Assembly (NCBI RefSeq): GCF_000142905.1
Contig: NW_013657650.1
Coordinates: 62,001 to 126,000, forward strand
DNA: 64,000 nucleotides
Direction: 5' to 3'
Source of the DNA: Thecamonas trahens ATCC 50062
Lineage: Eukaryota > Protista > Apusomonadida
Shown here: piece by piece, positions 7,820 through 26,897 of the stretch
Numbering within the stretch: the first letter of the stretch is position 1
How the letters are laid out: every line of letters starts with the position of its first letter
Translations under genes and position numbers: made by a program
The notes under the pieces: generated by a model
Told to the model about the DNA's origin: nothing
The model's database searches: none
What the model saw: only the letters and a program-made list of their open reading frames with translations

Positions 7820-8545
7820 GTGCAAGTGCGACAAGTGCGTGCCCGGCTTCCCCACCCCCCCCCCCCTGTTGCTGCCTTTGATCACGATCGCGATCGTGAT
7901 CGCGATCGTCGCCCATGGCACCGGGCACTCAACCGTACCGCAACGCATCACCAGCTGCCACCGGTTGACATCGCATATGGTTGTGGCATTACTACAAACC
8001 GTCAGAAGGTAGTCGGGAGGAAGACAAGATGTGGTAGCAACCGTTTTTTACTTTGATCTCTTTGTCGGCAAGTCATCGCGGCGGATGGAAGGTACGCGTA
8101 CGCCGCCACATGTGTGATCATTATCAGTTCTCGCTGGGCGTACTCTAGCATGTGGATCACACTCTAACGATAGAATGTACATGTGGCCAAGAGATGGATA
8201 AACGTAAACAGGATGTTGCACTTGTTATGTCCATGTAACTGATGCTCGAAAAGAGTATTTCTGTAGCGCGTACGAGCCCTTTATCCCGCACACACCAGAT
8301 CATCCCTGTCTGCCAGGTGTCAGTACCCCTTTTTTTGCTCACTCTTTTGCACCTCCCCCTTCAGGGGACGGGGCTGGTGTTGGTGATGGATGGGGGAGGG
8401 GCTGGTGATGGTGTTCGATGGGGAGGGGTTGGTGATGGTGAGGGATGGGGGAGGGGCTGGTGATGGTGTTCGATGGGGAGGCTGTGGCTTGAGCCACCAA
8501 AACAGCATTTCGCGACCTTTTCCTGGTGTTTGGCGCAACGCGGAG

Positions 8546-8623
8546 GAAGGCGCGACCTTCTTGTGCAACTCCATGCGTGTACGGTACAACAGTGCCTGGC
8601 AAGGCATGGTGCTATCCACATGG
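8546..8623 (+). repeat. Direct repeat copy 1 (pairs with 9771-9848)
   Basis: Core TCCATGCGTGTACG(G/T)TACAACAGTGCCTGGCAAGGCA(T/C)GGTGCTATC(C/T)ACATGG is found twice, 1225 bp apart. Confidence 0.9.
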
Positions 8624-8747
8624 AACTGTCCCCCCGCCTCGTGCCCATCCCTCTCCGATGTGCTCCTTCGGTGCCGCAGTCTGCCTCTCCTTCCGAGCGC
8701 GCGTGCGTCGGAAAACGATCACACAGGTTGATCAAGCCCACCATGCC

Positions 8748-9503
8748 CTACTCACGGTCACACGCACCAGACGAGCTCTCGGACATAGGGATCGCACCAC
8801 TCCCTTCAGAGCTCGTGCTGCTGCCCTCCAAGGTCGTCCGCTTCCGCGAGCTGCTGGTGTCGTTGGTGGCCATCGTCACGGGCGTGATGCCCGCGCTAGC
8901 AAGTTGGATCCTCAGCTCGCGAATGGTACGCTCCCGCTCGCGAATGGTGTCCGCAGCCTCCGTCGCCTGCTTTGCAATGGTGCTCGCCTGCTTTGCAATG
9001 GTGCTCGCCTGCTTCGCAATGGTGCTCGCCTGCTTCGCAATGGTGCCCTCCAAGGCATCGATCCGCTTCGTCAGCACCTTCAACAACACCTGGTTCGTCT
9101 CCGATTCGGATGCTGCCATGGCTCCTATCGAGTCAAGTATATCGCCACTTCCACCACCGCCGGCTCTCCGCCACTCTGCCCGTGCCACTCGCCGCAGCAT
9201 GCGCTCCCCTACGCCGCGACGCGTCCGCCATCGCCGCCGCCGCCGCTCCGAGCCACCCCGCCGGCATCTGCGTCCGCGTCGTTCGCCAGCCTTTCCCTCC
9301 TCGCCCTTCTCCTCGCCTTTCCCATCCAGCTCTGTCCGCTCTGCCTCTTCTCCCACGCCATCGGCCACCAACCCGAGCACCACCACCGCATCGTCGTCTT
9401 GCTTGCCGTCCCTGTCGGTCCGCATCTCGCTGCCACGGTCACCGTTGTCGCCCGCCACCGCCTCTGACCTGCACCCCTTCCCCGGCCCTTCCACCGAGGT
9501 CAT
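8748..9503 (-). CDS. Hypothetical coiled-coil protein with AKQASTI heptad repeats
   Basis: ORF contains RIDALEGTI(AKQASTI)x3 AKQATE...RELRIQL, encoded by a 21-bp repeat at about 8965-9045. Start codon uncertain. Confidence 0.5.
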   Translation of the reverse strand: MTSVEGPGKGCRSEAVAGDNGDRGSEMRTDRDGKQDDDAVVVLGLVADGVGEEAERTELDGKGEEKGEEGKAGERRGRRCRRGGSERRRRRWRTRRGVGERMLRRVARAEWRRAGGGGSGDILDSIGAMAASESETNQVLLKVLTKRIDALEGTIAKQASTIAKQASTIAKQASTIAKQATEAADTIRERERTIRELRIQLASAGITPVTMATNDTSSSRKRTTLEGSSTSSEGSGAIPMSESSSGACDRE

Positions 9504-9554
9504 AACCGCCCCAGCCAATGGAGTATGTATTGCAGGGCGGATGAGGTGTGTGCG

Positions 9555-9603
<49 letters not shown>
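9555..9603. repeat. (TA)n(TG)n compound microsatellite
   Basis: Seen directly in the sequence. Confidence 0.95.
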
Positions 9604-9605
<2 letters not shown>

Positions 9606-9770
9606 ATGTGGATGTGGGCGACGCGTGGTCGGCCCAGAACGAACAGCCGCATGCTGACCAACAACCGGTGCAGGTGCAGCCAGCTGGTGATTGATCGAAT
9701 GAAACGGGTTGGGCGACGGGCTGACCAGGTGGTGATCGATGGGCTTGAGCTGGTGGTGGTGACCGATGGG

Positions 9771-9848
9771 GAGGGCGCTATTTTTCTTTGTAGGTCCATG
9801 CGTGTACGTTACAACAGTGCCTGGCAAGGCACGGTGCTATCTACATGG
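9771..9848 (+). repeat. Direct repeat copy 2 (pairs with 8546-8623)
   Basis: See copy 1. Confidence 0.9.
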
Positions 9849-9867
9849 CGCTGACCCCCATATCCTG

Positions 9868-10137
9868 AGCTGATCTGGCAGAGGGTATTCAACCAGCTGA
9901 TCTGGGCAGAGGGTATTCGGCCAGCTGATCTGGCAGAGGGCATTCGGCCACTTGATCTGGGCAGAGGGTATTCGACCATATCTGGCAGAGGGTATTCAAC
10001 CAGCTGATCTGGCAGAGGGTATTCAACCAGCTGATCTGGCAGAGGGTATTCAACCAGCTGATCTGGCAGAGGGTATTCAACCAGCTGGACTGGCAGAGGG
10101 TATTCGGCCAGCTGACCTGGCAGAGGGCATCCGGCCA
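9868..10137. repeat. 27-bp minisatellite, ~10 copies
   Basis: Unit CAGCTGATCTGGCAGAGGGTATTCAAC, with 24- and 28-bp variants. Confidence 0.95.
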
Positions 10138-10294
10138 CCGCTCTCGATCAAAAAGGGAGGTGGCGGCGTGAAAGGGGAAGGGCCCACCAGCGAGAGCGTA
10201 GCAAGCAAAGGGACAAGGCGGACGAGTAGCCATACACCTACAACAGCCTACATACGGGAGGCCACAATACCCTTCCCGGACGGGAAGCACCAAC

Positions 10295-13200
10295 ATGGAC
10301 ACGTCCGAGTCGTACATTGTCCTTCCCAACACCCACCCCGGACCACCTGCGCACGGCTCGCCCGCCACCGCCACCGCCACCGCCACACCCATACCCATAC
10401 CCACAGCTACAGCTGCAGCTACACCGACCTCATCCAACCCTTTGTCAAGTGGTCATGATGAAGACCTTCGGCTTCCACACAGTCAACAGTCTCTTCCTGC
10501 TGACGGACCCTCGTTCTCCTCTACCCTCTCTATGACGCTGCCTGAGCTCGGCTCGGCTCGCCCTCACCATGGTCATGGTTATGGGCATGGTGGTGCTATG
10601 GAGAGTGCTCCTGCTGGACAGCATGCGCATCATCCACACGGTTTGAATTCGCAGCCGCTGGCCTTTGTCTCAGCTTCCTCGTCGCCGTACCAGGCCACAG
10701 TCTTCTCTCCGGCGTACCACACACTGCACGACGACGAGGACTCGGCTGGTCCTCCGCATTCTGCCTATGCATTGGCGTCTCCCGCAGTGGATGCGGCTTC
10801 CATGAACCATGCCGATGCTGATACCGGTCCGCAGGCCGCGCTTCCGCCGCGCGCAGTCCGTGCCCCGTTCCTCCGCCAGCGCGGCAACTCGGCGCCGATG
10901 ATGCCGGCGTCGCGAGGTCCAGGCTTTCCCGAGCCGACCCACCATGTACCCCATGCTGCTGCGCCGACGCTTCCGCTCCAGCTCCGTGCGCAGCTCCACG
11001 AGCCGCATCATCTCCGCGAGGCGCGCGACTCGGCGCGCGAGGGCTCGTCCGCGCCGTACCTCGATCTAGAGCAGATGATGGCGGCAAACGCGGGCGAGGC
11101 CAAAGCCGGCGGCGGCGGAGGCTCGGCCGGAGCCTCGCGGTACCCGCCGCCACCGCCTCCGCCACCAGCGGTGGAGCAGTCGTGGTCGCGGCAAGGCTAT
11201 AAGGCTTTCGACGAGATCCACCCGCGCGACCTCAAGCTGACCCGGCTGCTCGGCACCGGCGGCTTTGGCCAGGTCTGGGCTGGACTTTGGGGCGGAACGC
11301 CGGTCGCCATCAAGCGGCTAAAGCAGCAGACCCGGTCCGGCGCCGTGACGCCCGCCAAGATCTCCGCCTTTATGGAGGAAGCACGACTGCTCTCGCAAGT
11401 CCGCCACCCCAACTGTCTGCAGCTGCTGGGCGTCTCCACCCGCGGGCCTGACGTGTGCATCGTAACCGAGTACCTCCGCGGCGGCGACCTCAAGTCTGCG
11501 CTCTTTGACTCGTCGCTCCTCATCCGCGACACCAAGAAGATCGACATCCTCTCGCAAATTGCGTCGGGCGTCGAGTACCTCCACCGCAAGGACATCATCC
11601 ACCGCGATCTCAAGCCGCACAACGTGCTCCTCGACTTTAACATGTCGGTTGTCAAGGTAGCAGACTTTGGCCTCTCGGTCGTCATCGAGCGACTCGAGTC
11701 ACCGGCGAGCGGCGGCCCAGCGCCATCACGGGCGCGTTCCTCGTCGACCTTTCGCGCCATCGGCGTTGCAGGATCGCGCCGCTACATGGCGCCCGAGCTG
11801 TTTGTCGGCGGGACAGTGACGCCGGCCTCGGACACCTTTTCGTTTGGCGTCATCATCTGGGAGATGCTCTCGTCCAAGCGTGCATTTGACAACACTGACC
11901 GGACAGCCAACTGCTATGCCGGCCTCGAGCCGCCGCCGCCGTCGCTCCTCGCCTCGCTCCTTACCCTGCTTCTTGACGCCTGCCTCTCGGCGGATCCGGT
12001 GGCGCGGCCGTCGTTTGCCGACATTGTGGCCTCGCTTGCCGACGTCACCTCGCGCCTGGTTCTCGGCCAGGTCTTTCCTTCTGTTCCTGCGCTTCCGCTC
12101 AACTACGTCCACCGCGAGGCCTCATTTGCCGCCGCCAAGGACGCTCTGCTCTCGCTCGCAGCCAAGACCGACCACGCCGCCCAGCCGTCGGACCTCTTGC
12201 CCATCCGCGGCCTCTGCATTCAGGGCATGGGCGGGCTCGGCAAGTCGGTCCTTGCCGCTGCACTCGCTCGCGACGAGGACGTTCTCCGCATGTTCCCCGG
12301 CGGTGTGCATTGGATCTCCATCGGCCAGTCGCCAAACACCACCCGCCTCCAGCATGATCTCGTGCAGGAGCTTGGCAAGCCGTGCCCCTCGTTCTCAGAC
12401 GTCTCTGAGGGCAAGAACATGCTCGCCGAGCTCTTTGCACTCCCCTCGCACGCTCGCTCGCTCCTGGTCCTTGACGACGTCTGGGTCACCGGCCACCTAC
12501 TCCCGTTTGGTGTCCTCGGCCCCGGCTCGGCGTACCTGGTAACCTCGCGGATCCGCTCACTCGGCTCGATCATCAATCTCGTCGAGCTCCCGCTCTCGAC
12601 GCTCGACCCGGCATCGTCGCTCGAGCTCCTTGCACTCTGGACCCACACTCCGGTCGAGAACCTGCCGCCGGCCGCGCACAAGGTCGTCGAACGGTGCGGC
12701 AAGCTCCCGCTCGCGCTCGCCATGATTGGTGCCATGGTCCGCAACATGCCCTCGCGCTCCTGGCCTGTCGTCCTGCAGCGGCTCGAGGACTCGGTCCTCC
12801 TCTCCGACGACGTCGGCGGCGGTCCCGATGCGCTCGCGCCTTTGGTAGTCAGCTCAACCCTTGAGCTCGGTGGCATTTTCACTCCAGGCGACGTCATGCG
12901 CTCCATCGGCGTCTCGATCAAAGCCCTCACTGCGCTCCGCTTCCGGTACTATGACCTCGCCGTCTTTCCCGATGAGACTGCGTTTACGCTCCCGGCGCTG
13001 GAAGCCCTTTGGGGCGCACTCCCGTACGAGCCGCTCGACCGCGCCGACGTCTCGCGCCTCGTCGAGGTCTTTGTCGAAAAGTCGCTGCTGCAGCACGACG
13101 AGAGGACCGGCATGTTGCGGCTTCACGACTTGCAGCGCGAGTACATTGTGACGGTCGCCCGCTCGCGGCGCGGCAAAATGCACAGCCTCCACTCGCGGCT

Positions 13201-16200
13201 GCTCGACGGGTACGCTGCGCGTATCCCCAGCGCCCACGGCTTTGTGTGCTGGGAGCACGGGCCCGACGAGGCGTACTACCTCCAGCACATTGTGTACCAC
13301 CTTGTCCACGCCCAGCGCCGCGACGACATTCTCCGCCTCCTTCTCTCGTACGCATGGATCGAGAAAAAGATCTCGGCCGGTCTCGGCATCGAGGCTCTGG
13401 CGTCCGACTACGCGCTTGCTGCGCGGGCCTTTCCGGCCTACGCCGACCTGCTCCACGAGATCCGCGGTGCGCTCATGCTCTCAGCACAGGCTGTGCTCAA
13501 GCGGCGCGACCTGCTCTGCTTCCAGCTCATTGCGCGGCTCCAGTCGTCGCCACTCTCGACTCACCTCGGTTCGCTCCTCTCCGAGGCGCTCGAGTATCTC
13601 TCGCCGCTGCCGGACGCGGTGTACATTCCGTCATCGCCACTGCTGGAGACGCCGGGCAACGCGCTCATCCGAATTCTTCACGGGCACACCGAGCCGGTCT
13701 ACGCCCTCACCACCACACCGTCGGCCAAGCTCCTGCTCTCGGTCTCACCGACCACCGTCATGATGTGGGACACGCTCTCGGGCCTTGCCGTCCGGTCGAT
13801 TCCACGGACAGGCGCACGGGCGCCGGCGGCAGCGTCGGCCCAGGCCGAGCTTCCGGACGCACCGCACCCGGTCGCCACGCTTGTCAACAAGGTGCTCGAG
13901 CCGCGGGAGAGCGGGGCTTCGTCCGAGGCAGAAGCCTCGCTCTCGCGGTCACGCCAGAACCTGCAGTCCATTCACACCTACGCTGTTCATCTTGTGGTCG
14001 CTGACGAGCACCGGGTGTTTGTGGGTGGGTCGGGCGCCGTCCTCACGGTGTGGGATCTCTCGAGCGGCATCCCACTCGGCTCGATCGACAAAGCCGTCGA
14101 CGTGACTGCGCTGGCACTCGGGGCCAAGGCCCGGACACTCGTCTTTGCGCTTCGCACCTCACGTCGGATCTACGTGTACGACCTCTCGCCTCCGGCGGCG
14201 CCCGAGTTTGCGCTCTCGCAAGCTGCCGTGTGTGTTGGGCACAAAGGCTACATCTCAGGCGTCTCGATCTTCCCCGACGGGCGGCGGATGGTGTCGTGCG
14301 CGCGCGACGCGTCGCTTCGAATTTGGTCGACAAGCAGCGGCGAGGAGCTCGCCCGCCTCGTCCACACCTCGTCGTCGATTTCTGCGGTGGTGGTGAGCGC
14401 CGAGTCGGGCGATGTGTTCTTTGCTTCGGGCTCGACAGTCACTGTGTGGACACCCGAGACCGACGAGCTGCGAACGCTCTCGCCTGGCACCTCAGGCTCG
14501 CTCGGCTCGTCGCGCGTGTCGACGCTGGCGCTGGCTCCGCCGTCGGACGCATTTGTCGTTGCCGGCACGGCTTCAGGCACGGTACTGGTGTGGGATCTCG
14601 CAACCGGCATTTGTATGCAGCATGTCTCGGGCCACCGCGGGCCAGTCCTCGGCGTCACCGCGCTCGCCCCCGAAGTGCTCGGCGGAGCCGGCGGGCACGA
14701 GCAGGCCGCATTCGGCTCGGTCTTTACCGCGTCCGAGGACCGGACCATCCGGCACTTTCAGATTGAGCGGCGCAAGGTTGACACGGCCACCATCCAGCGA
14801 ATCCGGCACAAGGAGCCGACGACTTACCTTGCGCTAGCAACCGACGGAAGCTACATTCTGACTGGCGCGGCGGACCGGACGGTCATTGCGTGGTCAACCG
14901 AGCGGGCGAGCTCGTCGTCGCTCGGCGGACGACGGTTCCGGATTCTGGACAACCACCCGGGCGCGGTGACGGCGCTGGCGCTCACGCTCGACTCCAAGTT
15001 TGTGGTCTCGACTGCCGGCTCGCACCTCATGGTTTGGAATCTCAAGGCGGCGCGCTTGGTGTGGTCGGCGCGGGTCACCGAGTCGCCGATCTCATGCATT
15101 GCAGCGTCGAACACGGCAGTGGTGGCAGCCTGCGCGCTCGGCAGCGTCACTGTCTACGCCCTTTCGGACTCGGGCATGCTCGAGGAGGTGCAGGAGCTCC
15201 TCCCGCCGGCTCCCGGCCCGTATGAAGCGCCGGCGGCGGCGACGGTGCCTGCGGTGGTCATTTCACCCGAGTCGCGGCTGGTGGCGCTTGGATGGGCGAC
15301 CGGCGAGGTCCAGTTCTGGCGGTCGGGATCGGGAGGCGGGAGCGGAGACTATGCACTGGTCACCAGCGCGAGCGAGCACAGCGGTGCTATCCGAGCTGCC
15401 TGCCTCTCACCGGAGAACACACGGCTCATCACCGGTGGCACCGACATGGCGATTCGTATGTGGGACACGGTGTCCGGCTCAGCCGTCGGCGCGTTCTTTC
15501 TCGACGCGCCAGTGGCATGCGTGGCGGTTGTGCCCTGGTCGTCACCGGACCTTGTACCGCGGTCTGTGGCACCAGAGCCGTCGTATCTCATTGCAGTGGC
15601 GCTCGACAACTGCACGGTCACGCTCCATCACTCGTACCACTACACCATGCTCGCCTCGTACCTCTTTGACGCTTCGATCAACGGCATGGCGGCGACGCCG
15701 TCGGCAGACCTGGTTCTAACCCACGTGGCCGGGCGGACGTACCATCGGCTCATCCGGCACTACGACCAGACCCACTCTCACGCCTCGCTCGGGCTCACGA
15801 TGTTTGACTCGAACCGCCCGCGGTCGCTGCCGCGGATGGCGTCGGGCGAGGTTGGCGAGGGTTCGCCGGTCGTTCCCGCCGCCCCGCGCGACCGCGCTGA
15901 AAAGCCTGTGCGGCTGATCGAGCCGCGGGCAAGCGCTGCAAAGGGCAAAGCCAAGGGCAAGGGAAAGGTCAAGGGCAAGGGAAAGGTCAAGAGGAATGAT
16001 GGCGGCACAGACGGAAGCATGTCGAGCGGGAAGGGGAAGGCTCCAAGCAGCCCGTCAGGCCGCAAGGACTCGTCGCCGTCGGAAGGCGCGCTCGCGCTGC
16101 ACCTCGCAGCGTTGGAGACTGGCCCGTGGGCGTCGAGCGATGAGGGCGGGCCCGAGTTGAGCGGCTGCAGCGGGACTCCGCCAGCGACAAGTGGCGCCGA

Positions 16201-18915
16201 AGTGGGTGAACTGCGGCGTGTGGTGCGACCCAACTTTCTGCACCTGTACTGCTTCCGGCGGGGGCGGCAGCGTGTGCGAATGCTGGCAGTGCCGGCCAGC
16301 TATGAGTCGGTCACCCGCGACTGTGTGTACATTTTGGACACGGGCGCGGTGGTGTACGAGTTCTTTGGGCGGGCGTGCTCGACAAAGGAAAAGACCAAGG
16401 CGCTCGAGTTCACCACCTGGCTCCGCAAGCACGAGCGCGGCGGCGATCTGGAGCTTGTGCGGATCCTGGACACAAGCCGGCATCATGACGGCCACTCGCG
16501 GCGGTTTTGGCGCTGCTCTCGTATCCCGGAACGCATCCTCCGACGCTTGCCGAGTCACCTGCGGGATGGGCAGACATTGATGACGCACTGCACGCTGCGG
16601 TCCGGCTTTGGCGATTCAAGGACGTTCCGGTGTCTGTGACGACACCGTCGTCTGCTGCGCCGGTCCTCCCGCCGCCGACATCGCTGACGAGAGAGCTGTC
16701 ATCGTCGTATGTGTTTGTGGACGCCGGGCGGGTGATGGCGCCCGAAGGCTCGTCGACCGGCGGCGACGAGTCGGTAGCCGAGGGTGGCGACGGCGGCGAT
16801 GGGACCGAGTGCAGCGAAGGCGGCGGTGGTGGCGGCGGGAGCGGCGGGAGCGGACCTGGGAGTGGCTGCGGAAGCGGCGACGGCGACGAGTCCGAGTCGC
16901 ACATGCAGCAGGTGGCGCCTTCCGTGCTCAACCTCGCGCTCGAGGTGGAGTCGTTGGAGACTACGAGTGCACTGGCTACGCCGCAGCTACTGAGCCATGG
17001 CTCGTACCTTCTTGTCCTTCCTCAGGTCGCGTACGTGTGGATCGGGGCGCGGTCGCCCATCACGATCAACATGGCCGCGCAGTGGGTCAACTCTGCGACA
17101 GCGCTGCCTGTGGAGACAGCAACGGCGCTGCTGGGCCAGCGGCTGCCGCGGCGATGCGTGACGGTTTACGAGGGCAACGAGCCCTTTCTCTTCAAAGAAG
17201 CGTTTGACGAATGGCACGAGCCGCGGCAGCGAGCGACGCCACCGCCGCGGGCTACGGGCTCGCTGTTGGCGTCGTCGTCCAAGGCAGCGCAGGTTGCGCG
17301 GCGGGTGCTGCAGTCGCGAGCGCGGAGCACAGCAGCACGGAGCTCGAGCGGAAGCGCGAGCGGGAGCGAGGCTGGCGGCGGCGGGACTACGGCCGGGGGG
17401 GTGTCGTCGCGGCGGGCGGCAGCAGCAGCGGTGGCGCGGAACCGTCGCACGTCGGCGATCATGGCGGACGGGGCCGCCGCGGCAGCGGCGCTGGCGGGCT
17501 CTGTTCGTGTTGTGGTCTTTGAGAACGAGCACTGCATCTACGCGTTGCCGCGAGAGTTCCACGGTCACTTTTTCTCTGGCGACGGATGTCTGGTGCTGCA
17601 AACGCTCGAGGGCGGGAGCGAGGGCGGTAGTTCGCACGACGACGACGGGTCACGGTCGCGGTACCGGGTATTTTTCTGGCGTGGCGCGGACGCGCCGAAC
17701 AAGCTCTTCCTCAAGTTCAAGCTCAAGCTCAATGCCGGGGCGCTCGGTGACGTGTTTGGGCCGACGATTTCGCGGATCATCCAGACGACGACACGCGAGG
17801 TGGTACAGGGGCGGCATCCCGACAAGAACTTTACGGCGCTGTTCTCTGGCTCCCTGTTTGTGCACCACGGGCACGCGCGGTGCCGGATCCCGCTCCCGCC
17901 ATCGGCCATTCTGCGGGTTGCGCCCGAGTACCGGCTGCGGATGGCGCGAGGCAACGAGGGTGAAGCGCGCAGCGACGATGGGGCGTGGAACGCGCGGCAG
18001 CTGGAGCCGAGTAGCACGGCGCGGCTGTATGCGGTGCGCGGACTCGGGTCGGCTGGAGGTGTGCTACTAACGGCCGACGAGGTTCCGCCGGTGGCGTCGT
18101 CGCTCAACTCATCGCACGCGGCTGTACTGCTGGCTGCGCCTCGGGCGGCGCTGTGGATCGGGGCCGGAGCGCGCGGGTCCGAGGTTGCGGGCGCCCGGCG
18201 GTTCTACTCGTCACTGCGGGAGAGCAGCGAGCTCGGCGAGCTGGTGGAAGTTGCCGAGGGCAGTGAGCCGGAGTGGATGTGGGCCGCAGTAGGCGGGCGG
18301 GCGTGGTACCCGAGCTCTGCGGTGCTGCGCAATGCCAAGCGCGACGAGCCAGCGCTGTTCCGGTGCTCGACAGCCAAGGGCATGTTTGAACTTGCCGAGA
18401 TGGTGGGGCGGATGCCGTCTGCGCTCGAGCCGTCGTGCGTGTACATGCTCGTGGCGCTCCCGCACATCTGGCTGTGGATTGGATCGCAGGTGACGACGTT
18501 CGAGGCGAGCGAGGCACGCGAGGTGGCCGAGGCGTACGCCAAGGAGGAGCCAACGTCGGCGCACGTGCTCGAAGTGCATGCCGGGCGCGAGCCGATGGCA
18601 TTCTGGTCGCTATTCCGGGGGTGGGTCGCGCCGAACCACGGCGGTTACCCGCAGCAGGCAGCCATGGACGCGGAGCTGGCGCGGGCCGGATCGACTCTCT
18701 GCACCGCTGACGTTGTGGGCGTCACGCTCAACGCCGCGCAACAGCCGATGGTCTCGTGCCGCCAGTGCGGGCTTGTCGATGGAGTGTACGCCTGTCGCCG
18801 ATGCGGGGAGCGATGTGCGAGCGCTGGGCACACCGTAGCCGACGTCGGCGTCCTCCCCTTGGTTTGTGGCTGGCGTTGTACCGATCACAGAACCGGCAGT
18901 ACCAGCAGCGAGTGA
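10295..18915 (+). CDS. Kinase - NB-ARC (Apaf-1-like STAND) - WD40 - gelsolin/villin repeats - UBR-box-like fusion protein, ~2870 aa, with one frameshift at ~16505-16510
   Basis: Kinase GTGGFG/VAIK/HRDLKPHN/DFG/APE (~11240-12050). Walker A GMGGLGKS (12224), Walker B LLVLDDVW, GKLPLAL and LHDL. WD40s at ~13670-15720. A gelsolin repeat (VYILDTG..VYEFFG..EKTKA) starts in ORF 10295 and further gelsolin repeats continue in ORF 16507. Cys/His cluster at 18700-18880. Confidence 0.85.
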
Positions 18916-19148: not shown

Positions 19149-21861
19149 ATGTCAAGCGGAGCAGACGGGCTCCTCGGAGCGGTGGTGGACGAGGCGTGCC
19201 GAAGCGGGGAGGAGCAGGCGGTGCGTGAGGCGCTGGCCACCGGGTACGGGTGCGACTCGGCGTACAAGGGGTGGACGCCTCTGCAGAGGGCGGCGGCGGC
19301 GGGCCATGTGGCCATTGTCGGCCTTCTATGTGAAAGTATGGAGCCAAAGTGGATTTGCGGCGAGCAAAGACCGGTGCCACGGCATTGATGCTCGCCAGTG
19401 GCTGCGGGCATGTCAATGTGGTGAGGTTTCTGGTCAAGCAGACAAGAGCCGACGTCGATGCCTGCAATGACGAAGGCGCATCTCCATGCTATCTCGCGGC
19501 ACAGAACGGGCATCTCGAGGTGGTGCGATATCTGGTTTCCGACGTCGGCGTGGATCCACTCTCGCCGCTGCCGGACGGTACGTCGACGGTGTACATTGCG
19601 GCTCAGAACGGCCACGTCGACGTCCTGCGCTTTCTCCTCGGCCAGGTTCCCGAGGCTGCCATGGCCCGCCGGGCGGAGGGCGCCTTCCCGCTGCTTGTGG
19701 CTGCTTTTAGCGGCAAAGTCGAGGTCGCACGACTGCTGGTTGAGGAGCACGGGGCAGACGTTGACGAGTGCGACGCCAACGGGGTGACGCCGCTGTATGT
19801 GGCGGCACAGAACGGGCACCTGCCGATGGTGGCGTATCTTGCAACCGACGCCGGCGCCGCGGTCGAGGCCGCCGACGTCAAGGGCATCACGCCGCTGTAT
19901 GTGGCGGCGTACTCGGGCCAGCTGAGCATTGTGCGATACCTGGTGGAGAAGGCTGCCGCCGATGTACAGCACGGGCGCGACTCGGGCGCGACGCCACTGT
20001 ACATTGCAGCGCAAGTCGGCCATGCGCAAGTTGTCGAGTACCTAGCGACGACCGAGAGCGGCGGCGTGAACGCGATCAAGAGCAATGGCGAGACTGCGCT
20101 GCACACGGCAGCGCGGTACGGCCACCTACCGGTTGTGCAGTTTCTGGTCTCGCCTGCCGGCGGTGCCGACGTCGACCGAGTCCGGCGCGACGGCGCGACG
20201 CCGTTCTGGGTCGCAGCGCATGCGGGGCGGGTCGACGTCGTCCGCTGGCTCGCTTCCGCCGCACAGGCTGACGTGCGGCGGCCGACGTGCGACGGGACAA
20301 CTCCGTTTGCCGCGGCGTGCGCCCGCGGGCACGTCGCTACCGTTGCTTGCCTCGCCGTCGAGGTCCTTGCGCTCACACCCGGCGACTTTCCGGTCGACGC
20401 CACGGCGTACTCCCCGACATCATCCGGGTCCTCATGTCTGCACTTGCTGGCAAGATGGTCGGCGAGCGAAGCCGTGGCATGGTCGTCGATGGGAGTGGGC
20501 AGCGGCTGTTTGGCGTGCTCTCGCGGGCGGCGCTCGAGCTGTACGCCGGCATGCGGCTGGTCAAGCGAGTGCTGCTCTCGCGGGTCGAGGCCGTCACCCG
20601 CGACAGCGCCAGCATACTTGTACGCTGCATCGGCGGCGAGACCGTAGCGCTCGACGCCAGCAGTGAGGCCAACGCTGCGGAATGGGCGGCGGCGCTCGAC
20701 GAGGCGACTGGCCCCGGGCGGCTCGACTGGCGGCTTCAGGTCGCCGACCTAGTCCTTGACGAGACCAAGTCCGGGGTGTTGGGACGCGGCGCCTTTGGCG
20801 TTGTTCGTCGTGGAACGTGGCACGGTTTTCCGGTGGCGGTCAAGCAGCTGCACGATGCTGAGAGTATGGGCCAAGCGGCGCGGGCCGAGTTTGTGCACGA
20901 AGCCGAGCTCATGGCCGGCTTGCGGCACCCGAACGTGGTCCGCTTCATCGGCGCCTCACTCGACGCCGACTCTCCATGCCTGGTAACCGAGCTTCTGGAA
21001 GGTGGCTCGCTGTACTCGCTTCTCCACACGAAGCGGAGCTTTGCCGTCGACTGGCCGCTTGTTGTTCGCATCGCGAGCGACGTCGCAGCCGGCATGGCCT
21101 ACCTCCACGCTTGCGAGCCGCCGGTTGTTCACCGCGACCTCAAGTCGCCCAATGTCCTCCTTGACCGCAGCCTCCGGGCCAAGATCGCCGATTTTGGCCT
21201 GACCAAGGCCATTGCCGAGACCGGTGTCCACACAACTGCCGGAACCGCTCGCTGGGCCGCACCCGAGCTCCTCCGCAACGAGGCGTACGGCCACAAGGTC
21301 GATGTCTACTCGTTTGGCGTTTTGCTGTGGGAGATGTGTACGCGGAGTGTGCCGTACCGCGAGCTCGACAACAATCAAGTCATCTTCCGCGCCCTCCGCG
21401 GCGGCGCACGGCCGACCATCCCCGACTACGTCCCGCCCACACTCGCCGCACTGATGTCCGAGGCCTGGGCCGAGGACCCGACCGTGCGTCCAGCCTTTGT
21501 TGACATTGTCGCCCGCCTCGACCTCGGCGCGCCGTCGGTGGCTGCCAGCTCGGGAGGCCCTGCCGTTCCTGACGGTGTGCCAGGCACTCGTGCCCCGCGT
21601 GGTATGCTCCTCTCGTCATCGTCGTCGTCCGATGCCGACGATGATGGCCAGGCCGATCCTGCCGACGAGAGCGATGACGACAACGACAGCGACGACGAGC
21701 CACTGCTCCGCACCGTTGTCCACTTCTCCGCCTCAAATAGCGGCGCCAGTCCGGATCAGGGCTCATCATCGACGGCCGCACCTCGCGGCGGTTTTGACAT
21801 CAGCGTCATCTCGTCCTGGCTCTCGTTTGACGTAGCCTCGTGGTGGGCGGGCAAGAGCTGA
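19149..21861 (+). CDS. Ankyrin repeats - PH-like - TKL Ser/Thr kinase, ~904 aa, with frameshifts at 19333-19335 and 20412-20415
   Basis: About 11 ankyrin repeats (GxTPLYxAAxxGH). PH-like helix ASSEANAAEWAAAL. Kinase GRGAFG/VAVK/HRDLKSPN/DFG/APE. Three ORFs join cleanly with +1 nt each. Confidence 0.88.
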
Positions 21862-22239
21862 ATGTAGTCGACATCGCTCGAGAGTGGGTGTGTACCGGGA
21901 AAAAATATTTGCCGCTTAAAGCCGCACGTGCATGTCTTCCAAACCTTGCAGCGTTGCAAGGCAGCAAAGGCCGACGCGTGCCAGTGAGCAAAGTGAGCTG
22001 GTGTGGACCGAGCGAGCCACTCTCTCATGCCATGACATTCCTCGTCTCTAGTCAAGGCAAGCGAGGAGTGGCCATGGCGGAATCGCCCTCCATACCCGCC
22101 ATGCCCCCTTTGCCGATGCAGACCAGGGATGAGCTCCACCGCCGCGCCCGTCACGGACCTACCCAGACGTGTCACCACTCTGCCGAGCCATGCTGCTCAC
22201 GCGCCAACTGCCGGCTCTGCCACCGCCACCAGCACCGTT

Positions 22240-22271
<32 letters not shown>

Positions 22272-22424
22272 GACGACCACAACCACTCTCACATGAAAAG
22301 ACGTGGCCGATGCGGGGAGGTTCGCCTTTCGTGCCGTGGTGGGGTTCGTGGGGCTCGTGACGGCTCGCTCCGCAACAACTCTCCTCACCACCACAGCAGC
22401 CACAGCCGACGCCGTGGCACGCTC

Positions 22425-25400
22425 ATGCTCATCCTCCTCGTCAGTGCGGTAGTACTGGCAGCGACAGTCAGGGTCGGCGAGGCGAGCGAGACCAGGACAG
22501 GTTCGGTGGCCTCGGGAGATGCTGCGTCGATGCAGATCAGCACTGGGTTCGTCAGCAGTGATCCCGGACATGTCGATTTCGATGGCTCAGAAGAGCAAGG
22601 CGCCGCCATTTTTCAACTCTCGGGCTCGGTAGTGAGCACAACAGGGGTGATCTGGATCGAAAGTGCAATCCTCACTCTGCGAGATGTCGATGCGCCAAGC
22701 CCGATTGCTGTCAACCTTGCCTTCTACAACTACTCGGTGGCAGACAAGGGCAAGACGTTTGACGACCCGCCGTGGTCTGACTTGTTTGGGTTGGACGCCT
22801 TTCCCACCTCGGCTCCATACACAGTCACATTGTCGCCCAGCTCGCCATCGTTTGTGGCTACGACCGCGCTACGGCCTTTCCTCACAGACGCCTATTTGGC
22901 AGATGCCTTTGACGGCAATCGCTTTGCCATTCGCCTCTCCATGGTGGCTGGCGAGTGTCCGGCCGGCACCTGCCGCATCGACTTTGACCCACAGCCGTCG
23001 CTGTTCATAACTTACCATGAGGTCTGTCCCGAGATCTCGGTGGAGAACGGGTCCGTGAGTAACGATCCAACAACCGGGCGCCCGATGGCGCTCACAGGTG
23101 ACAAACTGCGTATCACCTGCGACTCTGGATTCGACGAGTCCGGCGTGGACGGCAGCGACGATGTTACCTGTCTCAGCGACGGCTCCTACTCGCCAGCCAC
23201 CCCAAGCTGTGTGGCTCTCTCGTCACCGCCACCCCCACCATCGCCACCGCCACCACCAGCACCGCCACCATCTCCTCCTCCACCACTGCCATCGCCACCA
23301 CCACCACCGCCACCATCTCCTCATCCGCCACCGCCACCGCCGTCGCCACCACCACCACCACCACCACCATCACCGCCACCGCCACTATCACCACCGCCAC
23401 CATCTCCTCCACCACCACCGCCACCATCTCCTCCACCACCACCGCCACCATCACCGCCACCGTCACCACCACCTCCGCCATCTCCACCGTGCCCGCTACC
23501 AGCGTTCTTGGACAGCTGCGGCGTGTGCTCTGGCCCAGGCACCGGTCATGTGGGTGACTCTGACCTCGACGCCTGTGGCGTTTGCTTTGGCGGCAACGGC
23601 GATCTCGACGACTGCGGAGTCTGCTTTGGAGGCAACTCTGCCAAGGACGGCTGTGGCGTGTGCTATGGAAACAACGCGACGTGCGCCGGGTGCGACGGTG
23701 TACCATACTCGGGCAAAGTACCGGATGTTTGCGGCGTGTGTGGCGGCGATGGTTCGGGGTGCTCGGGCTGCAACTTTATCCCGATCCCACTCGGCGGCGT
23801 GTGGTTTGACGGGTGCGGTGTGTGTGGCGGATCGGCCAGCATCTCGACATGCGCCACACCATGCATCGCCAACACCACGGCGGTGTTCGACTGCTTTGGA
23901 GTGTGCAACGGTACAGCATACGTCGATGACTGCGGTATGTGCGTCGGTGGCGCCACGTCGAACACAGCCAACTTTTTCAAGGATGCGTGCGGGATGTGCT
24001 TTGGCGGCGAGACTGCTCGCGATGCGTGCGGCGACTGCCACGGCGGCAACGCGCGCCGCGACGAGTGCGGCATCTGCGGTGGCGGAAACTCGCGGATGGA
24101 CAGCTGCGGGGTGTGCTTTGGCGGTGAGCGAGGCAAGGACATATGTGGCGTGTGCGGTGGAAATGGAACAAGCTGCATCGGTTGCGACGCTGTCATCGAC
24201 TCGACTGCCGCCTTTGACGCATGCGGCGTGTGCGGCGGGCACAACGAGTGTCTTCGCGAGCGCAGCTCATCCAGCTCGCTGACGTTGCCAGTGGCGGTTG
24301 GCAGCAGTGCTGGCGTCCTACTCTGCTGCGTTGTCATTGTCATCTGCATTGTCATGCTCTCGCGGCGGTCGCGACGAGTGGCGACCGAGGCCATCACTGC
24401 AAGCAAGGCCAAAGCTGCGCTTGCGGTAGCGCCACAGGGCGTAGTCATTCTCCTTGTCACCGATGTGGTCGACTCGACTCGGCTGTGGGAGGAGGTGCCG
24501 GACGTGATGGCAGCATGCTCGGTGCAGCACGATGCTATTGTGCTCAATGCTCTCGCGGCACACGACGGGTACGTGGTGCGCAACGAGGGTGACTCGTTCA
24601 TTGCCGCCTTTCCAACGTCCCGAGCGAGCGCCGCCATCGACGCTGCCCGCGACATCCAGCACGAACTTGCCAACACCGACTGGCCGCGTGGTCTCAAGTT
24701 GCGAACCCGCCAAGGCCTAGCCTGTCGCATCGGTCTGCACGCTGGTCGACCGGTGATCCGATTTGACGAGCGGACGCAGCGGGTGGCGTACGGCGGAGTT
24801 GCCATGGTCCGTGTCGACGCCATCACGAACATGGGTGGTGCCGGCGAGATTGTTGTCTCGCAAGCGGTGCTGATCATGGCCGGCGGTGGGTATGCCACTC
24901 GCGAGCTGGGCACTGCTCCAGGCGGCAGCGACGCAGTTGTGTACAAGCTGATGATGGCGAGCAGCAACGAGCTGTCAGGCTCATCCACTACCAGCGCTGA
25001 CGAAACGTCGACAACATCACTCGCGACAGCACTCGCCGGCCTCGGAAACGTGGTCCCAACGGCGACGACACAGTCTGTTCCGCAGTCGGCCCTGGCCTCG
25101 CTCGCCGAGCTGCTCTCGGATCGTGAAAGCGAGTCGTCGCACCAGTCGAGCGGGCCGGAAGTTCGCAAGTCAACCCGCTCGCAGTCGGTGGCTGTCGACC
25201 TGGGCTGGGGCCCATCGCGCCGGGCACAGGCGCCGACCCGGACTCGGACCCGAGCTGAGACCCGGAGCCGCACAAGGACCGGCTTGCGCCAGAGGGTGCG
25301 GACTAGATCAAAGCGCCGGCGTCACGCCTCGGTCGAGCTTGTCCCGTCGTCGTCACAAGCCAGCATGTGCTCCTCGATTCCCGAGCTGGCCGAGACGATC

Positions 25401-25826
25401 AGACTTCGGCAAACGCGCTCTTCACTTGGGGTGCTGCCACCTGCCGGCTCGGGCGTCTCGCGGCATCGGGTGCGATCGAGGCGCAAGCGCCGCAACCGCG
25501 ACAGGGCTACACGCTTGCGAAAGTCGTCGAGCAACGTTGTGACCAGAGGCCTGCGGCACGCCTCAATCTCGGTATGCGGTCCCGTTGTCAAGCCTTCTTC
25601 GTCTCTCGGTGCACTCGGCGCATCGATGGTCTCGTCTCCCAGCCTCTCCGCCACCGTCACAGAGTCTGGCTCCGGCTCGCACCTCACCTGCGACGATAGC
25701 ATCTCCGTTCTCATCACGCCACACCACGCCTTGACAGCCGGCACCCCGACTCCAACCGCCTTGATGAGTCTCGTCTCCAGCCCAACAGTAGGCCCCCATG
25801 CGCCGGCGTCCGAATGTGGGCGCTAG
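22425..25826 (+). CDS. Single-pass receptor-type class III nucleotidyl cyclase-like protein (signal peptide, sushi/CCP, SPPPP tract, DxCGVCGG repeats, TM, cyclase domain)
   Basis: MLILLVSAVVLAATVRVGEA signal, sushi CPEISVENG...LRITCDSGF...TCLSDGSYSPATPSC, TM AGVLLCCVVIVICIVML, cyclase VTDVVDSTRLWE...EGDSF...RIGLHAG. The start could be 22293. Confidence 0.85.
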   Translation: MLILLVSAVVLAATVRVGEASETRTGSVASGDAASMQISTGFVSSDPGHVDFDGSEEQGAAIFQLSGSVVSTTGVIWIESAILTLRDVDAPSPIAVNLAFYNYSVADKGKTFDDPPWSDLFGLDAFPTSAPYTVTLSPSSPSFVATTALRPFLTDAYLADAFDGNRFAIRLSMVAGECPAGTCRIDFDPQPSLFITYHEVCPEISVENGSVSNDPTTGRPMALTGDKLRITCDSGFDESGVDGSDDVTCLSDGSYSPATPSCVALSSPPPPPSPPPPPAPPPSPPPPLPSPPPPPPPSPHPPPPPPSPPPPPPPPSPPPPLSPPPPSPPPPPPPSPPPPPPPSPPPSPPPPPSPPCPLPAFLDSCGVCSGPGTGHVGDSDLDACGVCFGGNGDLDDCGVCFGGNSAKDGCGVCYGNNATCAGCDGVPYSGKVPDVCGVCGGDGSGCSGCNFIPIPLGGVWFDGCGVCGGSASISTCATPCIANTTAVFDCFGVCNGTAYVDDCGMCVGGATSNTANFFKDACGMCFGGETARDACGDCHGGNARRDECGICGGGNSRMDSCGVCFGGERGKDICGVCGGNGTSCIGCDAVIDSTAAFDACGVCGGHNECLRERSSSSSLTLPVAVGSSAGVLLCCVVIVICIVMLSRRSRRVATEAITASKAKAALAVAPQGVVILLVTDVVDSTRLWEEVPDVMAACSVQHDAIVLNALAAHDGYVVRNEGDSFIAAFPTSRASAAIDAARDIQHELANTDWPRGLKLRTRQGLACRIGLHAGRPVIRFDERTQRVAYGGVAMVRVDAITNMGGAGEIVVSQAVLIMAGGGYATRELGTAPGGSDAVVYKLMMASSNELSGSSTTSADETSTTSLATALAGLGNVVPTATTQSVPQSALASLAELLSDRESESSHQSSGPEVRKSTRSQSVAVDLGWGPSRRAQAPTRTRTRAETRSRTRTGLRQRVRTRSKRRRHASVELVPSSSQASMCSSIPELAETIRLRQTRSSLGVLPPAGSGVSRHRVRSRRKRRNRDRATRLRKSSSNVVTRGLRHASISVCGPVVKPSSSLGALGASMVSSPSLSATVTESGSGSHLTCDDSISVLITPHHALTAGTPTPTALMSLVSSPTVGPHAPASECGR

Positions 25827-25973
25827 CATGGTAGCCCACGTGTTTCCATTCGAGTCGGATGACGTTCCAATGAAAGAAACCGCCACAAAACTGGGCGCCG
25901 TTTTCGTGTGTCACGCTGCGCAACAGAGCAAGCAAGATCAACAACAGCACACGCGCGCGCCTGGTTCTTGATC

Positions 25974-26897
25974 ATGTCGGCATCAAGCAGTATTTCACGC
26001 GGAAGGGGTCGAAACCGCGGCAAGGGCAAGCCGGCCGCCGGTGGCAACAACCGCGAGTCGCGGAGGACCCTGGGTCGTGAGACGGTGGACATTGCCAACT
26101 CCGGCATGTGCGGTACGGTGGAGATTGGGCATCTTGTCGAGGCGGCACGAAGCGGACGGGTCGAGTACGGGCCCAAGGACGACGTGGTGAGCGAGTGGGA
26201 TGCGATCCGCGGCGAGGCGGCGGAAGTGGAGACGGTGTTCGAGGTCACGCCCGAGAGCTCGATGAAGGCGGCTCGGCGGCTGGACGCCGCAGCGCCGGGC
26301 CAGGTGGCGGTCCTCTCGTTTGCATCGGCCAAGAACCCGGGAGGCGGGGTGCTCAAGGGATCCAAGGCGCAAGAAGAGGACTTGTGCCGGGCGTCTGCGC
26401 TGTACAAGTGCCTGCTGGGCGCGCCCGGTTACGCGGCAAACAAGGCCAATGACCGCCGCGGCCTCTACACCGACCACGCACTTTACGTTCCGCAGGTCCC
26501 AGTCTTCCGGTACCCGAACGGGAGGCTCATCGCTAGCAGCTCCGAGCTCAAGGTAATGTCGTTTGTCTCGAGCGCAGCGCCAAATCGCGGGCGGCTGGGC
26601 AAGAACCGGAGTGGCGAGTGCAAGGCGGCGCTTGTGAGAAGGATTGAGCGGGCGCTGGCCATGATGGCCGTCCATGGGCACAGGCACATTGTGCTTGGCG
26701 CGTTTGGGTGCGGAGTGTTCAAGAACCCAGCTGACGAGGTGGCTGCTGTGTTTGCAGACGTGCTGCGCTCGCCGCGGTTTGCCGGAGTTTTTGAACTCGT
26801 CGTCTTTGCGGTTCTGTGCAACAGCACAGGGCGGCCGACGGCCAACTTTCGGGCGTTTGCGGCCAAGTTTGCAGCCGAGGGCGGCGCGAGCGACTAG
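25974..26897 (+). CDS. Microbial-type poly(ADP-ribose) glycohydrolase macrodomain (TIGR02452/DUF2263 family)
   Basis: FASAKNPGGGVLKGSKAQEEDLCRAS (GGG-x6-QEE catalytic loop) and LGAFGCGVFKNP. Confidence 0.92.
   Translation: MSASSSISRGRGRNRGKGKPAAGGNNRESRRTLGRETVDIANSGMCGTVEIGHLVEAARSGRVEYGPKDDVVSEWDAIRGEAAEVETVFEVTPESSMKAARRLDAAAPGQVAVLSFASAKNPGGGVLKGSKAQEEDLCRASALYKCLLGAPGYAANKANDRRGLYTDHALYVPQVPVFRYPNGRLIASSSELKVMSFVSSAAPNRGRLGKNRSGECKAALVRRIERALAMMAVHGHRHIVLGAFGCGVFKNPADEVAAVFADVLRSPRFAGVFELVVFAVLCNSTGRPTANFRAFAAKFAAEGGASD

Follow-up and report, generated by a model that had tools for sequence, protein, structure and literature searches.

Does a protein of the Apaf-1 type exist in which the nucleotide-operated switch shares a single polypeptide with a protein kinase and an array of gelsolin domains? 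The question is raised by a locus of the apusomonad Thecamonas trahens ATCC 50062, at positions 10295-18915 (+ strand) of a 64,000-nucleotide stretch of contig NW_013657650.1 (positions 62,001 to 126,000, forward strand; hereafter the window). Two overlapping open reading frames (ORFs) cover the locus, around which G+C amounts to 66%: ORF1 (10295-16639, 2114 amino acids) and ORF2 (16507-18915, 802 amino acids). On the sequence evidence the two ORFs are one gene, with a predicted product of a single chain of ~2,870 residues. From the N-terminus this chain comprises a probably disordered leader without a Pfam match, a TKL kinase, an NB-ARC domain with its winged-helix and helical domains (WHD and HD2), tandem WD40 propellers, a linker, five gelsolin folds and a Cys/His finger. 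We lean towards interpreting the whole as the product of one gene, an Apaf-1-type signaling ATPase of the STAND class in which a kinase and WD40 propellers are combined with a derived gelsolin-UBR tail.

One gene across a frame break

ORF1 and ORF2 were searched separately, and an intact orthologue from the Tara Oceans material served as the reference across the break between them. This protein (P0001, contig L001; 2269 amino acids) was found, at 75% identity, by a search with the NB-ARC region. Its chain has kinase, NB-ARC, WD40 and gelsolin Pfam matches and is encoded by one uninterrupted ORF. This ORF runs colinear first with residues 498-2078 of ORF1 and next with ORF2, reading through the position of the T. 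trahens break. The cluster to which it belongs has three members, each a single ORF of 2269 amino acids, differing by up to 1.7%; two of the three contigs were fetched, from Tara samples ERZ908065 and ERZ908037. The features of the T. trahens gene, including the break, are as follows:

10295..11230, + strand: N-terminus of 312 residues, Pro/Ala/His-rich by composition of the translation, with the start ATG at 10295
11231..12037, + strand: TKL-type Ser/Thr kinase, residues 313-581 (PF07714 E 3e-49, PF00069 E 1e-45)
12212..12793, + strand: NB-ARC, residues 640-833 (PF00931 E 5e-26 to 5e-25, 88.7-91.8 bits against a cut-off of 23.5)
12947..13417, + strand: winged helix with LHD (943) and HD2 (PF17908 APAF1_C, 27.7 bits against a cut-off of 22.8)
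13670..15769, + strand: ~13-14 WD40 blades in tandem propellers (PF00400 E 1e-30 and many propeller families)
15770..16240, + strand: low-complexity linker within ORF1, with polybasic GK repeats in T. trahens (from the translation)
16241..16534, + strand: gelsolin domain 1 of 5, G2-like (PF00626 E 9e-8, 32.3 bits against a cut-off of 21; ORF1 residues 1995-2056)
16505..16512, + strand: frame break, one base short relative to the frame of the orthologue (GTTTTGGC), from the orthologue comparison
16603..17205, + strand: G3-like gelsolin domain (2 of 5) carrying a Gly/Ser-rich insertion (orthologous tail as modeled by AlphaFold2 (AF2); aligned with domain 3 of villin-like proteins)
17497..17883, + strand: gelsolin domain 3 of 5, G4-like, 72% identical to the orthologue (AF2, Foldseek, alignment with villin-like proteins)
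18013..18294, + strand: gelsolin domain 4 of 5, G5-like, D625 replaced (AF2, Foldseek, alignment with villin-like proteins)
18352..18627, + strand: gelsolin domain 5 of 5, G6-like (PF00626 E 6e-9, ORF2 residues 639-700; AF2, Foldseek)
18700..18879, + strand: probable degenerate UBR4-type UBR-box zinc finger at the position of the villin headpiece (zf-UBR E 0.003 and a family profile)
18913..18915, + strand: terminal stop codon, at a position equivalent to the end of the orthologue

The change of frame has to fall within 16489-16637, and the orthologue puts the break between FW and LLS: in T. trahens the first frame gives ...HHDGHSRRFW and the following one LLSYPG..., where the orthologue has HHDGSSRTFWELLSAPG (...TFWELLSAPG...). 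As all flanking residues are accounted for and a single codon of the orthologue corresponds to two bases, we place a one-base indel, and no intron, at 16505-16512. The initial annotation had proposed that one added base at TTTTGG (16505-16510) would restore a single chain, and the uninterrupted orthologue, with the shortfall at 16505-16512, bears this out. Two other explanations of the break were considered and ruled out, namely an intron, for which the orthologue leaves one codon against two bases, and programmed frameshifting, as there is no in-frame slippery heptamer of the form X XXY YYZ at the site and the orthologue is unshifted. The missing base is most likely an assembly error.

The gene might instead carry a real frameshift in ATCC 50062, such that the product is a 2114-residue kinase-NB-ARC-WD40 protein ending 43 out-of-frame codons past the break, within the first gelsolin domain, and the rest of the tail is a very recent pseudogene remnant. 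The break is indeed present in the assembly as given, but we regard this as improbable: ORF2 stays open for 800 codons, with a chance probability of ~2e-5 at the local off-frame stop rate, the gelsolin core positions kept by the orthologue are likewise kept in T. trahens, and the break falls in the short homopolymer context TTTTGG, a typical kind of site for sequencing indels. Far less probable still is a pair of abutting genes, one for kinase, NB-ARC and WD40 and a separate one for the gelsolin-UBR part. Such a division could be sought in the low-complexity linker at 15770-16240, whose sequence is not conserved relative to the orthologue and for which 150 open codons have a ~13% chance here, and free-standing gelsolin+UBR genes are present in the T. 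trahens genome. However, the linker is open and in frame in both species, and WD40 repeats, linker and first gelsolin domain share one stop-free frame in T. trahens and in the three Tara contigs; furthermore, the tail lacks both a G1 domain and an evident start of its own. The ratio of nonsynonymous to synonymous substitution rates (dN/dS) relative to the orthologue is ~0.15-0.3 in most folded domains on either side of the break, and both halves have been kept together in two species whose synonymous sites are near saturation.

The locus is single-copy in the T. trahens genome, and an exact look-up of the 2114-residue ORF1 product returned no record. A match on C8 that might have been a second copy was rejected, as it belongs to an LRR+gelsolin, flightless-like locus. 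At that locus (C8:263000-268800; L021, L022) a gelsolin ORF of 1369 residues comes after an LRR ORF and lies in a different frame, the two making up a flightless-I-like gene split by an intron or an indel.

The kinase-NB-ARC-WD40 chassis

The kinase has all the catalytic motifs (GTGGFGQV at residue 320, VAIK at 337, HRDLK(PHN) at 436, DFG at 457 and APE at 499); MLK4, MLK1, CTR1, B-Raf and TAK1 are among its best solved matches, and its nearest relatives are the kinases of the T. trahens kinase-NB-ARC paralogues, at 46-50% identity. The switch has the Walker A (GMGGLGKS, 644), Walker B (LLVLDDVW, 723) and sensor-1 (TSR, 750) motifs of the NB-ARC domain, followed by GKLPLAL (802) and LHD (943). 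The best solved relative of this region is Apaf-1 (1z6t, E 3e-31), on whose LHDLQ the LHDLQ of the T. trahens protein aligns; the Pfam match to the APAF-1-like WHD is weak. Matches to WD40 and other propeller families lie between residues ~1126 and 1750, and an AF2 model of residues 1100-1860 (mean predicted local distance difference test score (pLDDT) 73) has ~50 strands arranged as 13-14 blades in tandem propellers, a count that is approximate as it is taken from the model. A Foldseek search with this model retrieved tandem-propeller proteins, and the top query template modeling (TM) scores among the matches listed belong to Apaf-1 (0.44 for 3shf, then 0.41).

These results agree with what the initial annotation had read from the sequence. 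The TKL kinase that it called intact matches Pfam PK_Tyr_Ser-Thr at E 3e-49 with every catalytic motif in place; the NB-ARC switch that it regarded as complete and Apaf-1-like has NB-ARC and APAF1_C matches above the Pfam cut-offs; and its many WD40 repeats are recovered both by Pfam and in the AF2 model. The motifs that it quoted, GMGGLGKS, LLVLDDVW, GKLPLAL and LHD among them, are all at the residues given above. Its view that the kinase stands in the place of the CARD likewise holds, in that a catalytically intact TKL kinase precedes the switch and Pfam finds no CARD. In the 312 residues ahead of the kinase no Pfam family is matched at E<=1, and there is no CARD or death-fold match; this segment is probably disordered. 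Orthologue confirmation is lacking for the 5' end because both fetched Tara contigs (L001 and L019) begin inside the kinase.

Thus the T. trahens protein shares with Apaf-1 the NB-ARC domain, the winged helix with LHD, HD2 and the tandem WD40 propellers in identical order. It differs from Apaf-1 in having a TKL kinase and no CARD at its N-terminus, ~900 more residues past the propellers (G2-G6 and the UBR finger), and ~13-14 blades as against 15. Its NB-ARC domain also scores higher against bacterial NB-ARC-WD40/TPR/TIR proteins (39% identity, 264 bits) than against Apaf-1 (112 bits), with 58-167 bits against its paralogues. Recent transfer of the chassis from bacteria is not supported, as a quick tree places the T. 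trahens sequences outside the sampled bacterial clade, with the fusion gene on a very short branch; because of this placement, we attribute the high bacterial scores to slow evolution and not to a transfer of recent date. The tree has no animal or plant outgroup, and C70, which gave no BLAST match, is not among its sequences.

At least 21 NB-ARC matches are present in the T. trahens genome, the fusion gene scoring best. Four further loci (L011-L018) combine a TKL kinase with NB-ARC: those at C3:502289-509400, C11:210318-217490 and C53:199168-204950 go on into WD40 repeats, and that at C15:406203-409502 goes on into an RWD domain. The kinase-NB-ARC genes are, as judged from their predicted products, a paralogous family of at least five T. 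trahens members, at least four of them with WD40, and none of the paralogues has the gelsolin-UBR tail. Two long stretches are without a Pfam match, namely the C-terminal 765 residues of the protein from C3 and, in that from C11, the 733 residues that follow the NB-ARC domain.

ROCO kinases (LRRK2, Dictyostelium Roco) likewise join an NTPase switch, a TKL kinase and C-terminal WD40 repeats in one giant cytoskeleton-associated protein. They share the design logic of the T. trahens protein and are analogues, not members of the same group, as its switch is NB-ARC rather than Roc-COR and the domain order differs. Closer in composition are bacterial proteins (P0275, P0276 and P0028) with a kinase, NB-ARC, APAF1_C and C-terminal WD40. 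Their kinases are 26-30% identical to the T. trahens kinase, and such fusions are scattered across the bacterial clade; the P0275 gene lies among CsgG and cytochrome genes. The N-terminal domains of fungal NLRs include PKinase (Dyrka et al. 2014, PMC4986451), which gives an N-terminal protein kinase on an NLR chassis, and Pkinase is one of the commonest domains integrated in plant NLRs (Sarris et al. 2016, PMC4759884). The bacterial and fungal kinase-NB-ARC proteins are without a gelsolin or UBR module, and none was found to be characterized. As the kinase-NB-ARC-WD40 combination occurs in bacteria, and kinases are found in fungal NLRs and integrated in plant NLRs, the chassis is of a known kind; both it and the principle of domain integration are already known.

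The gelsolin-UBR tail and its origin

When the orthologous tail (870 residues) was modeled by AF2 from a 46-row alignment (mean pLDDT 72.5), five gelsolin folds were seen, along with disordered inserts and a small finger at the C-terminus. Foldseek matches this model to full-length gelsolin (8viz_G, E 1.5e-38) and villin (9jus, E 1e-35), and the last three domains superimpose on G4-G6 structures with TM-scores of 0.73-0.78. The five domains align with the second to sixth domains of villin-like proteins of ~810-830 amino acids: the first, in which the last helix is interrupted by the frame break (76% identity to the orthologue), falls on their second domain, the second terminates in the motif EG.EP..FKE.F..W, and the fifth is 74% identical to the orthologue. 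As the alignment falls on domains 2-6 and only the low-complexity linker lies upstream, we assign the tail to G2-G6, with G1 missing.

The tail retains the structural Gly, Trp, Phe and Leu columns, taken as those with at least 80% agreement among conventional homologues. In contrast, the acidic residues D270, D485, E488, E523, D625, D723, D728 and D733 (orthologue-tail numbering), which conventional homologues keep, are replaced in both species. The third domain has lost the conserved acidic residues of its long helix (D485, E488 and E523, with H527 also replaced) and the fifth has lost D723, D728 and D733. We presume that the replaced positions correspond to the Ca2+ sites of gelsolin structures. 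Since most of the conserved acidic residues are gone, and G1 with them, the tail is unlikely to be a working Ca2+-driven severing or capping module. Of the villin/gelsolin module claimed by the initial annotation, therefore, the five gelsolin-like repeats stand, on the AF2 model of the orthologous tail and its Foldseek matches to gelsolin, with the refinement that they are G2-G6 without G1 and have mostly lost the acidic residues. A complex prediction for window:17470-18627 (the G4-G6-like part) with an intron-less T. trahens actin (L009:1492-2616) scored 0.00, which is no evidence either way. The best-scoring actin gene of the genome (L008 1498-2700 (-), C39) has an in-frame, stop-free insert of ~75 bases after 'AVFPS'. 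This insert is probably an intron that stays open, and it is a reminder that open frames in the GC-rich T. trahens genome can conceal introns.

The Cys/His finger, which had been described as UBR-box-like, scores 18.1 bits alone against Pfam zf-UBR, below the cut-off of 25.2. A profile of four sequences (the window finger, that of the orthologue and two paralogues) matches the UBR box of UBR4 (8j9r) at E 5e-14, followed by UBR5, FBXO11 and BIG; the finger is probably a degenerate UBR box. The UBR4 box binds three zinc ions via nine Cys and two His (PMC10687169). The T. trahens finger has eight Cys and at least one His, with the His after the sixth Cys changed to Ala and the C-terminal Cys pair altered; that of the orthologue is without the His after the sixth Cys and without the last two Cys. 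Given the lost zinc ligands together with the lost acidic residues, the tail looks like a copy that has preserved its fold and eroded in function.

A phmmer search with the orthologous tail against 1.84 billion representative proteins gave high scores only for its own cluster, followed by proteins of gelsolin/villin length at 30-34% identity. The best 150 of 757 hits were listed, and no other protein with NB-ARC and gelsolin is among these 150; a weaker one might rank below them. Among JGI metagenome contigs, a scan with the tail alignment turned up no relatives, a word-based search for long tail-bearing proteins returned the orthologue alone, and the ESM Atlas gave generic WD40 clusters only, below 0.85. 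Literature searches found nothing relevant for Thecamonas with NB-ARC or Apaf-1, NB-ARC with gelsolin, gelsolin with integrated domains and NLR, or gelsolin with the UBR box. Hence the earlier statement that no protein of the same architecture had been described is in line with the exhaustive protein search (best 150 of 757), the word-based searches and the literature. The fusion of kinase, NB-ARC, WD40, gelsolin and UBR was found in T. trahens and one related uncultured protist only.

Cys-rich C-termini (at least six Cys in the last 90 residues) occur in four of the 150 proteins listed, P0121, P0122, P0138 and P0142, of which P0121 and P0122 are the top two. P0121 has gelsolin repeats and a zf-UBR match of 28.5 bits, above the Pfam cut-off; P0122 is a T. 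trahens 'severin' (XP_013759619.1, C14) and P0138 a T. trahens protein with an STE-type kinase, gelsolin repeats and a finger (XP_013757031.1, C28). A further T. trahens gene at C1:209650-213102 (L003 1651-5103) encodes CAP-Gly, gelsolin and UBR domains. P0121 is a 69% identical orthologue of this C1 gene and P0142 a 61% identical orthologue of the P0138 gene. Because these Tara counterparts stand at 60-70% identity, about the level of the NLR-like gene, we attribute the Tara material to a related apusomonad, although its contigs derive from different samples.

The Thecamonas gelsolin+UBR proteins, together with P0121 and P0142 from Tara, are the best non-self matches of the tail among the hits listed. 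Like the tail, their gelsolin repeats end in a UBR4-type finger and not in a villin headpiece; they are free-standing or carry other N-terminal domains, and are 25-35% identical to the tail. In contrast to the tail, at least P0121 and the C1 protein show a gelsolin-type Pfam match that precedes the G2-equivalent domain; these two also keep the CH..H and C.CG ligand motifs of the finger, and P0121 and P0142 keep most of the conserved acidic residues. These comparisons show the tail to derive from free-standing gelsolin+UBR proteins, a family of apusomonads, of which a diverged copy was added to one member of the kinase-NB-ARC-WD40 family. The tail shares the multi-domain gelsolin fold with villin, gelsolin, villidin and flightless-I, and differs from these in lacking G1 and the headpiece, in its lost acidic positions and in being joined to a STAND ATPase. 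Gelsolin arrays fused to LRR (P0167, P0194, P0202), WD40+PH (villidin-like P0215), CH or kinase (P0138) domains are seen among the hits listed, and none fused to NB-ARC. No earlier description appears to exist of the gelsolin+UBR family, or of a G2-G6+UBR module joined to a STAND ATPase.

Possible function and genomic setting

If the protein works as Apaf-1 and other STAND proteins do, its C-terminal repeats would hold the ADP-bound switch closed until a ligand opens it, nucleotide exchange would then drive oligomerization, and the N-terminal kinases, crowded together, would trans-phosphorylate and signal. The role of the gelsolin-UBR tail would be that of a further binding module, either as a tether to actin filaments via its G2-like domain or as an additional surface for input. 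A second organism shares this domain order, from the C-lobe of the kinase to the finger. Several points weigh against this interpretation. Oligomerization and trans-activation of the kinase are proposed by analogy only, and actin binding by the tail is hypothetical, residues kept by conventional gelsolins having been lost. Two or three of the 11 UBR4 zinc ligands are missing from the finger, whose fold may not be that of a UBR box. The frame break may be a real mutation of the sequenced strain. Finally, as the Tara orthologue contigs begin within the kinase, the N-terminal third is known from T. trahens alone.

It is conceivable, if on present evidence unlikely, that the protein is an immune receptor with an integrated decoy, in which the degenerate tail is a bait mimicking the cell's own gelsolin+UBR proteins: a pathogen effector or actin damage engaging the bait would open the NB-ARC switch, and the kinase would fire a defense or death signal. 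The initial annotation had likewise seen a candidate actin-guarding immune receptor here. The genome has a family of NB-ARC genes with at least 21 loci; the tail copies free-standing host proteins, has lost conserved functional residues while keeping the fold, as plant integrated decoys often have, and is placed after the sensor repeats; and kinases are known partners of NLRs (PMC4759884, PMC4986451). The plant NLRs with integrated domains (PMC4759884) are likewise an NB-ARC chassis with an extra domain copied from a host protein family, although the T. trahens protein has WD40 rather than LRR and no paired helper NLR nearby; gelsolin, villin and actin are absent from the main text of that plant survey. 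Against a decoy, the gene has a 1:1 orthologue under purifying selection (dN/dS ~0.15-0.3) with no sign of diversification, no paired NLR adjoins the locus, no apusomonad pathogen is known to target gelsolins, and PADLOC gave generic kinase matches only and none for NB-ARC. Purifying selection and the lack of a neighboring NLR fit a conserved signaling protein at least as well as an arms-race receptor. The decoy idea is a more specific version of the binding-module interpretation, and it fits the pattern of an eroded copy. A bolder form of it, which we hold to be a rather distant prospect, would make this the first non-plant NLR-like receptor with an integrated decoy: a functionally dead gelsolin+UBR copy would serve as bait on an Apaf-1-type switch, and interference with the actin-regulating machinery, or with the recognition of N-termini by the UBR finger, would trigger signaling by an oligomeric 'kinase apoptosome'.

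The neighbors of the gene in T. trahens are a USP hydrolase, ORFs of no known kind, an ankyrin ORF, a kinase ORF, a cyclase-like receptor and a PARG gene. The ankyrin-repeat ORF (19349-20647) and the ORF with a PH-like domain and TKL kinase (20287-21861) overlap in different frames, with a switch near 20400, and the overlap at 19349-21861 represents either a second one-base assembly indel or two abutting genes. Next on the same strand are an ORF of 1328 residues (21840-25826), in which a class III cyclase domain is weakly matched, and a PARG gene of the microbial type (25908-26897). Downstream of the orthologue, the longer Tara contig L019 has a gene (8477-11401) with CH domains and EF-hands, actinin/fimbrin-like; as this differs from the ankyrin/kinase neighbor of T. 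trahens, there is no synteny on the downstream side.

On the interpretation favored here, that of a one-gene Apaf-1-type ATPase with a derived gelsolin-UBR tail, an Apaf-1-like switch with a kinase in the place of the output domain constitutes a small gene family in a free-living protist, and one member of this chassis has captured a whole host module behind its sensor repeats, the same evolutionary move as that of the plant integrated-decoy receptors. Apusomonads adjoin animals and fungi on the tree, and therefore their STAND proteins inform how machines of the Apaf-1 and NLR types were put together. Should the tail bind actin, a switch of the death/immunity type would be physically linked to the cytoskeleton.

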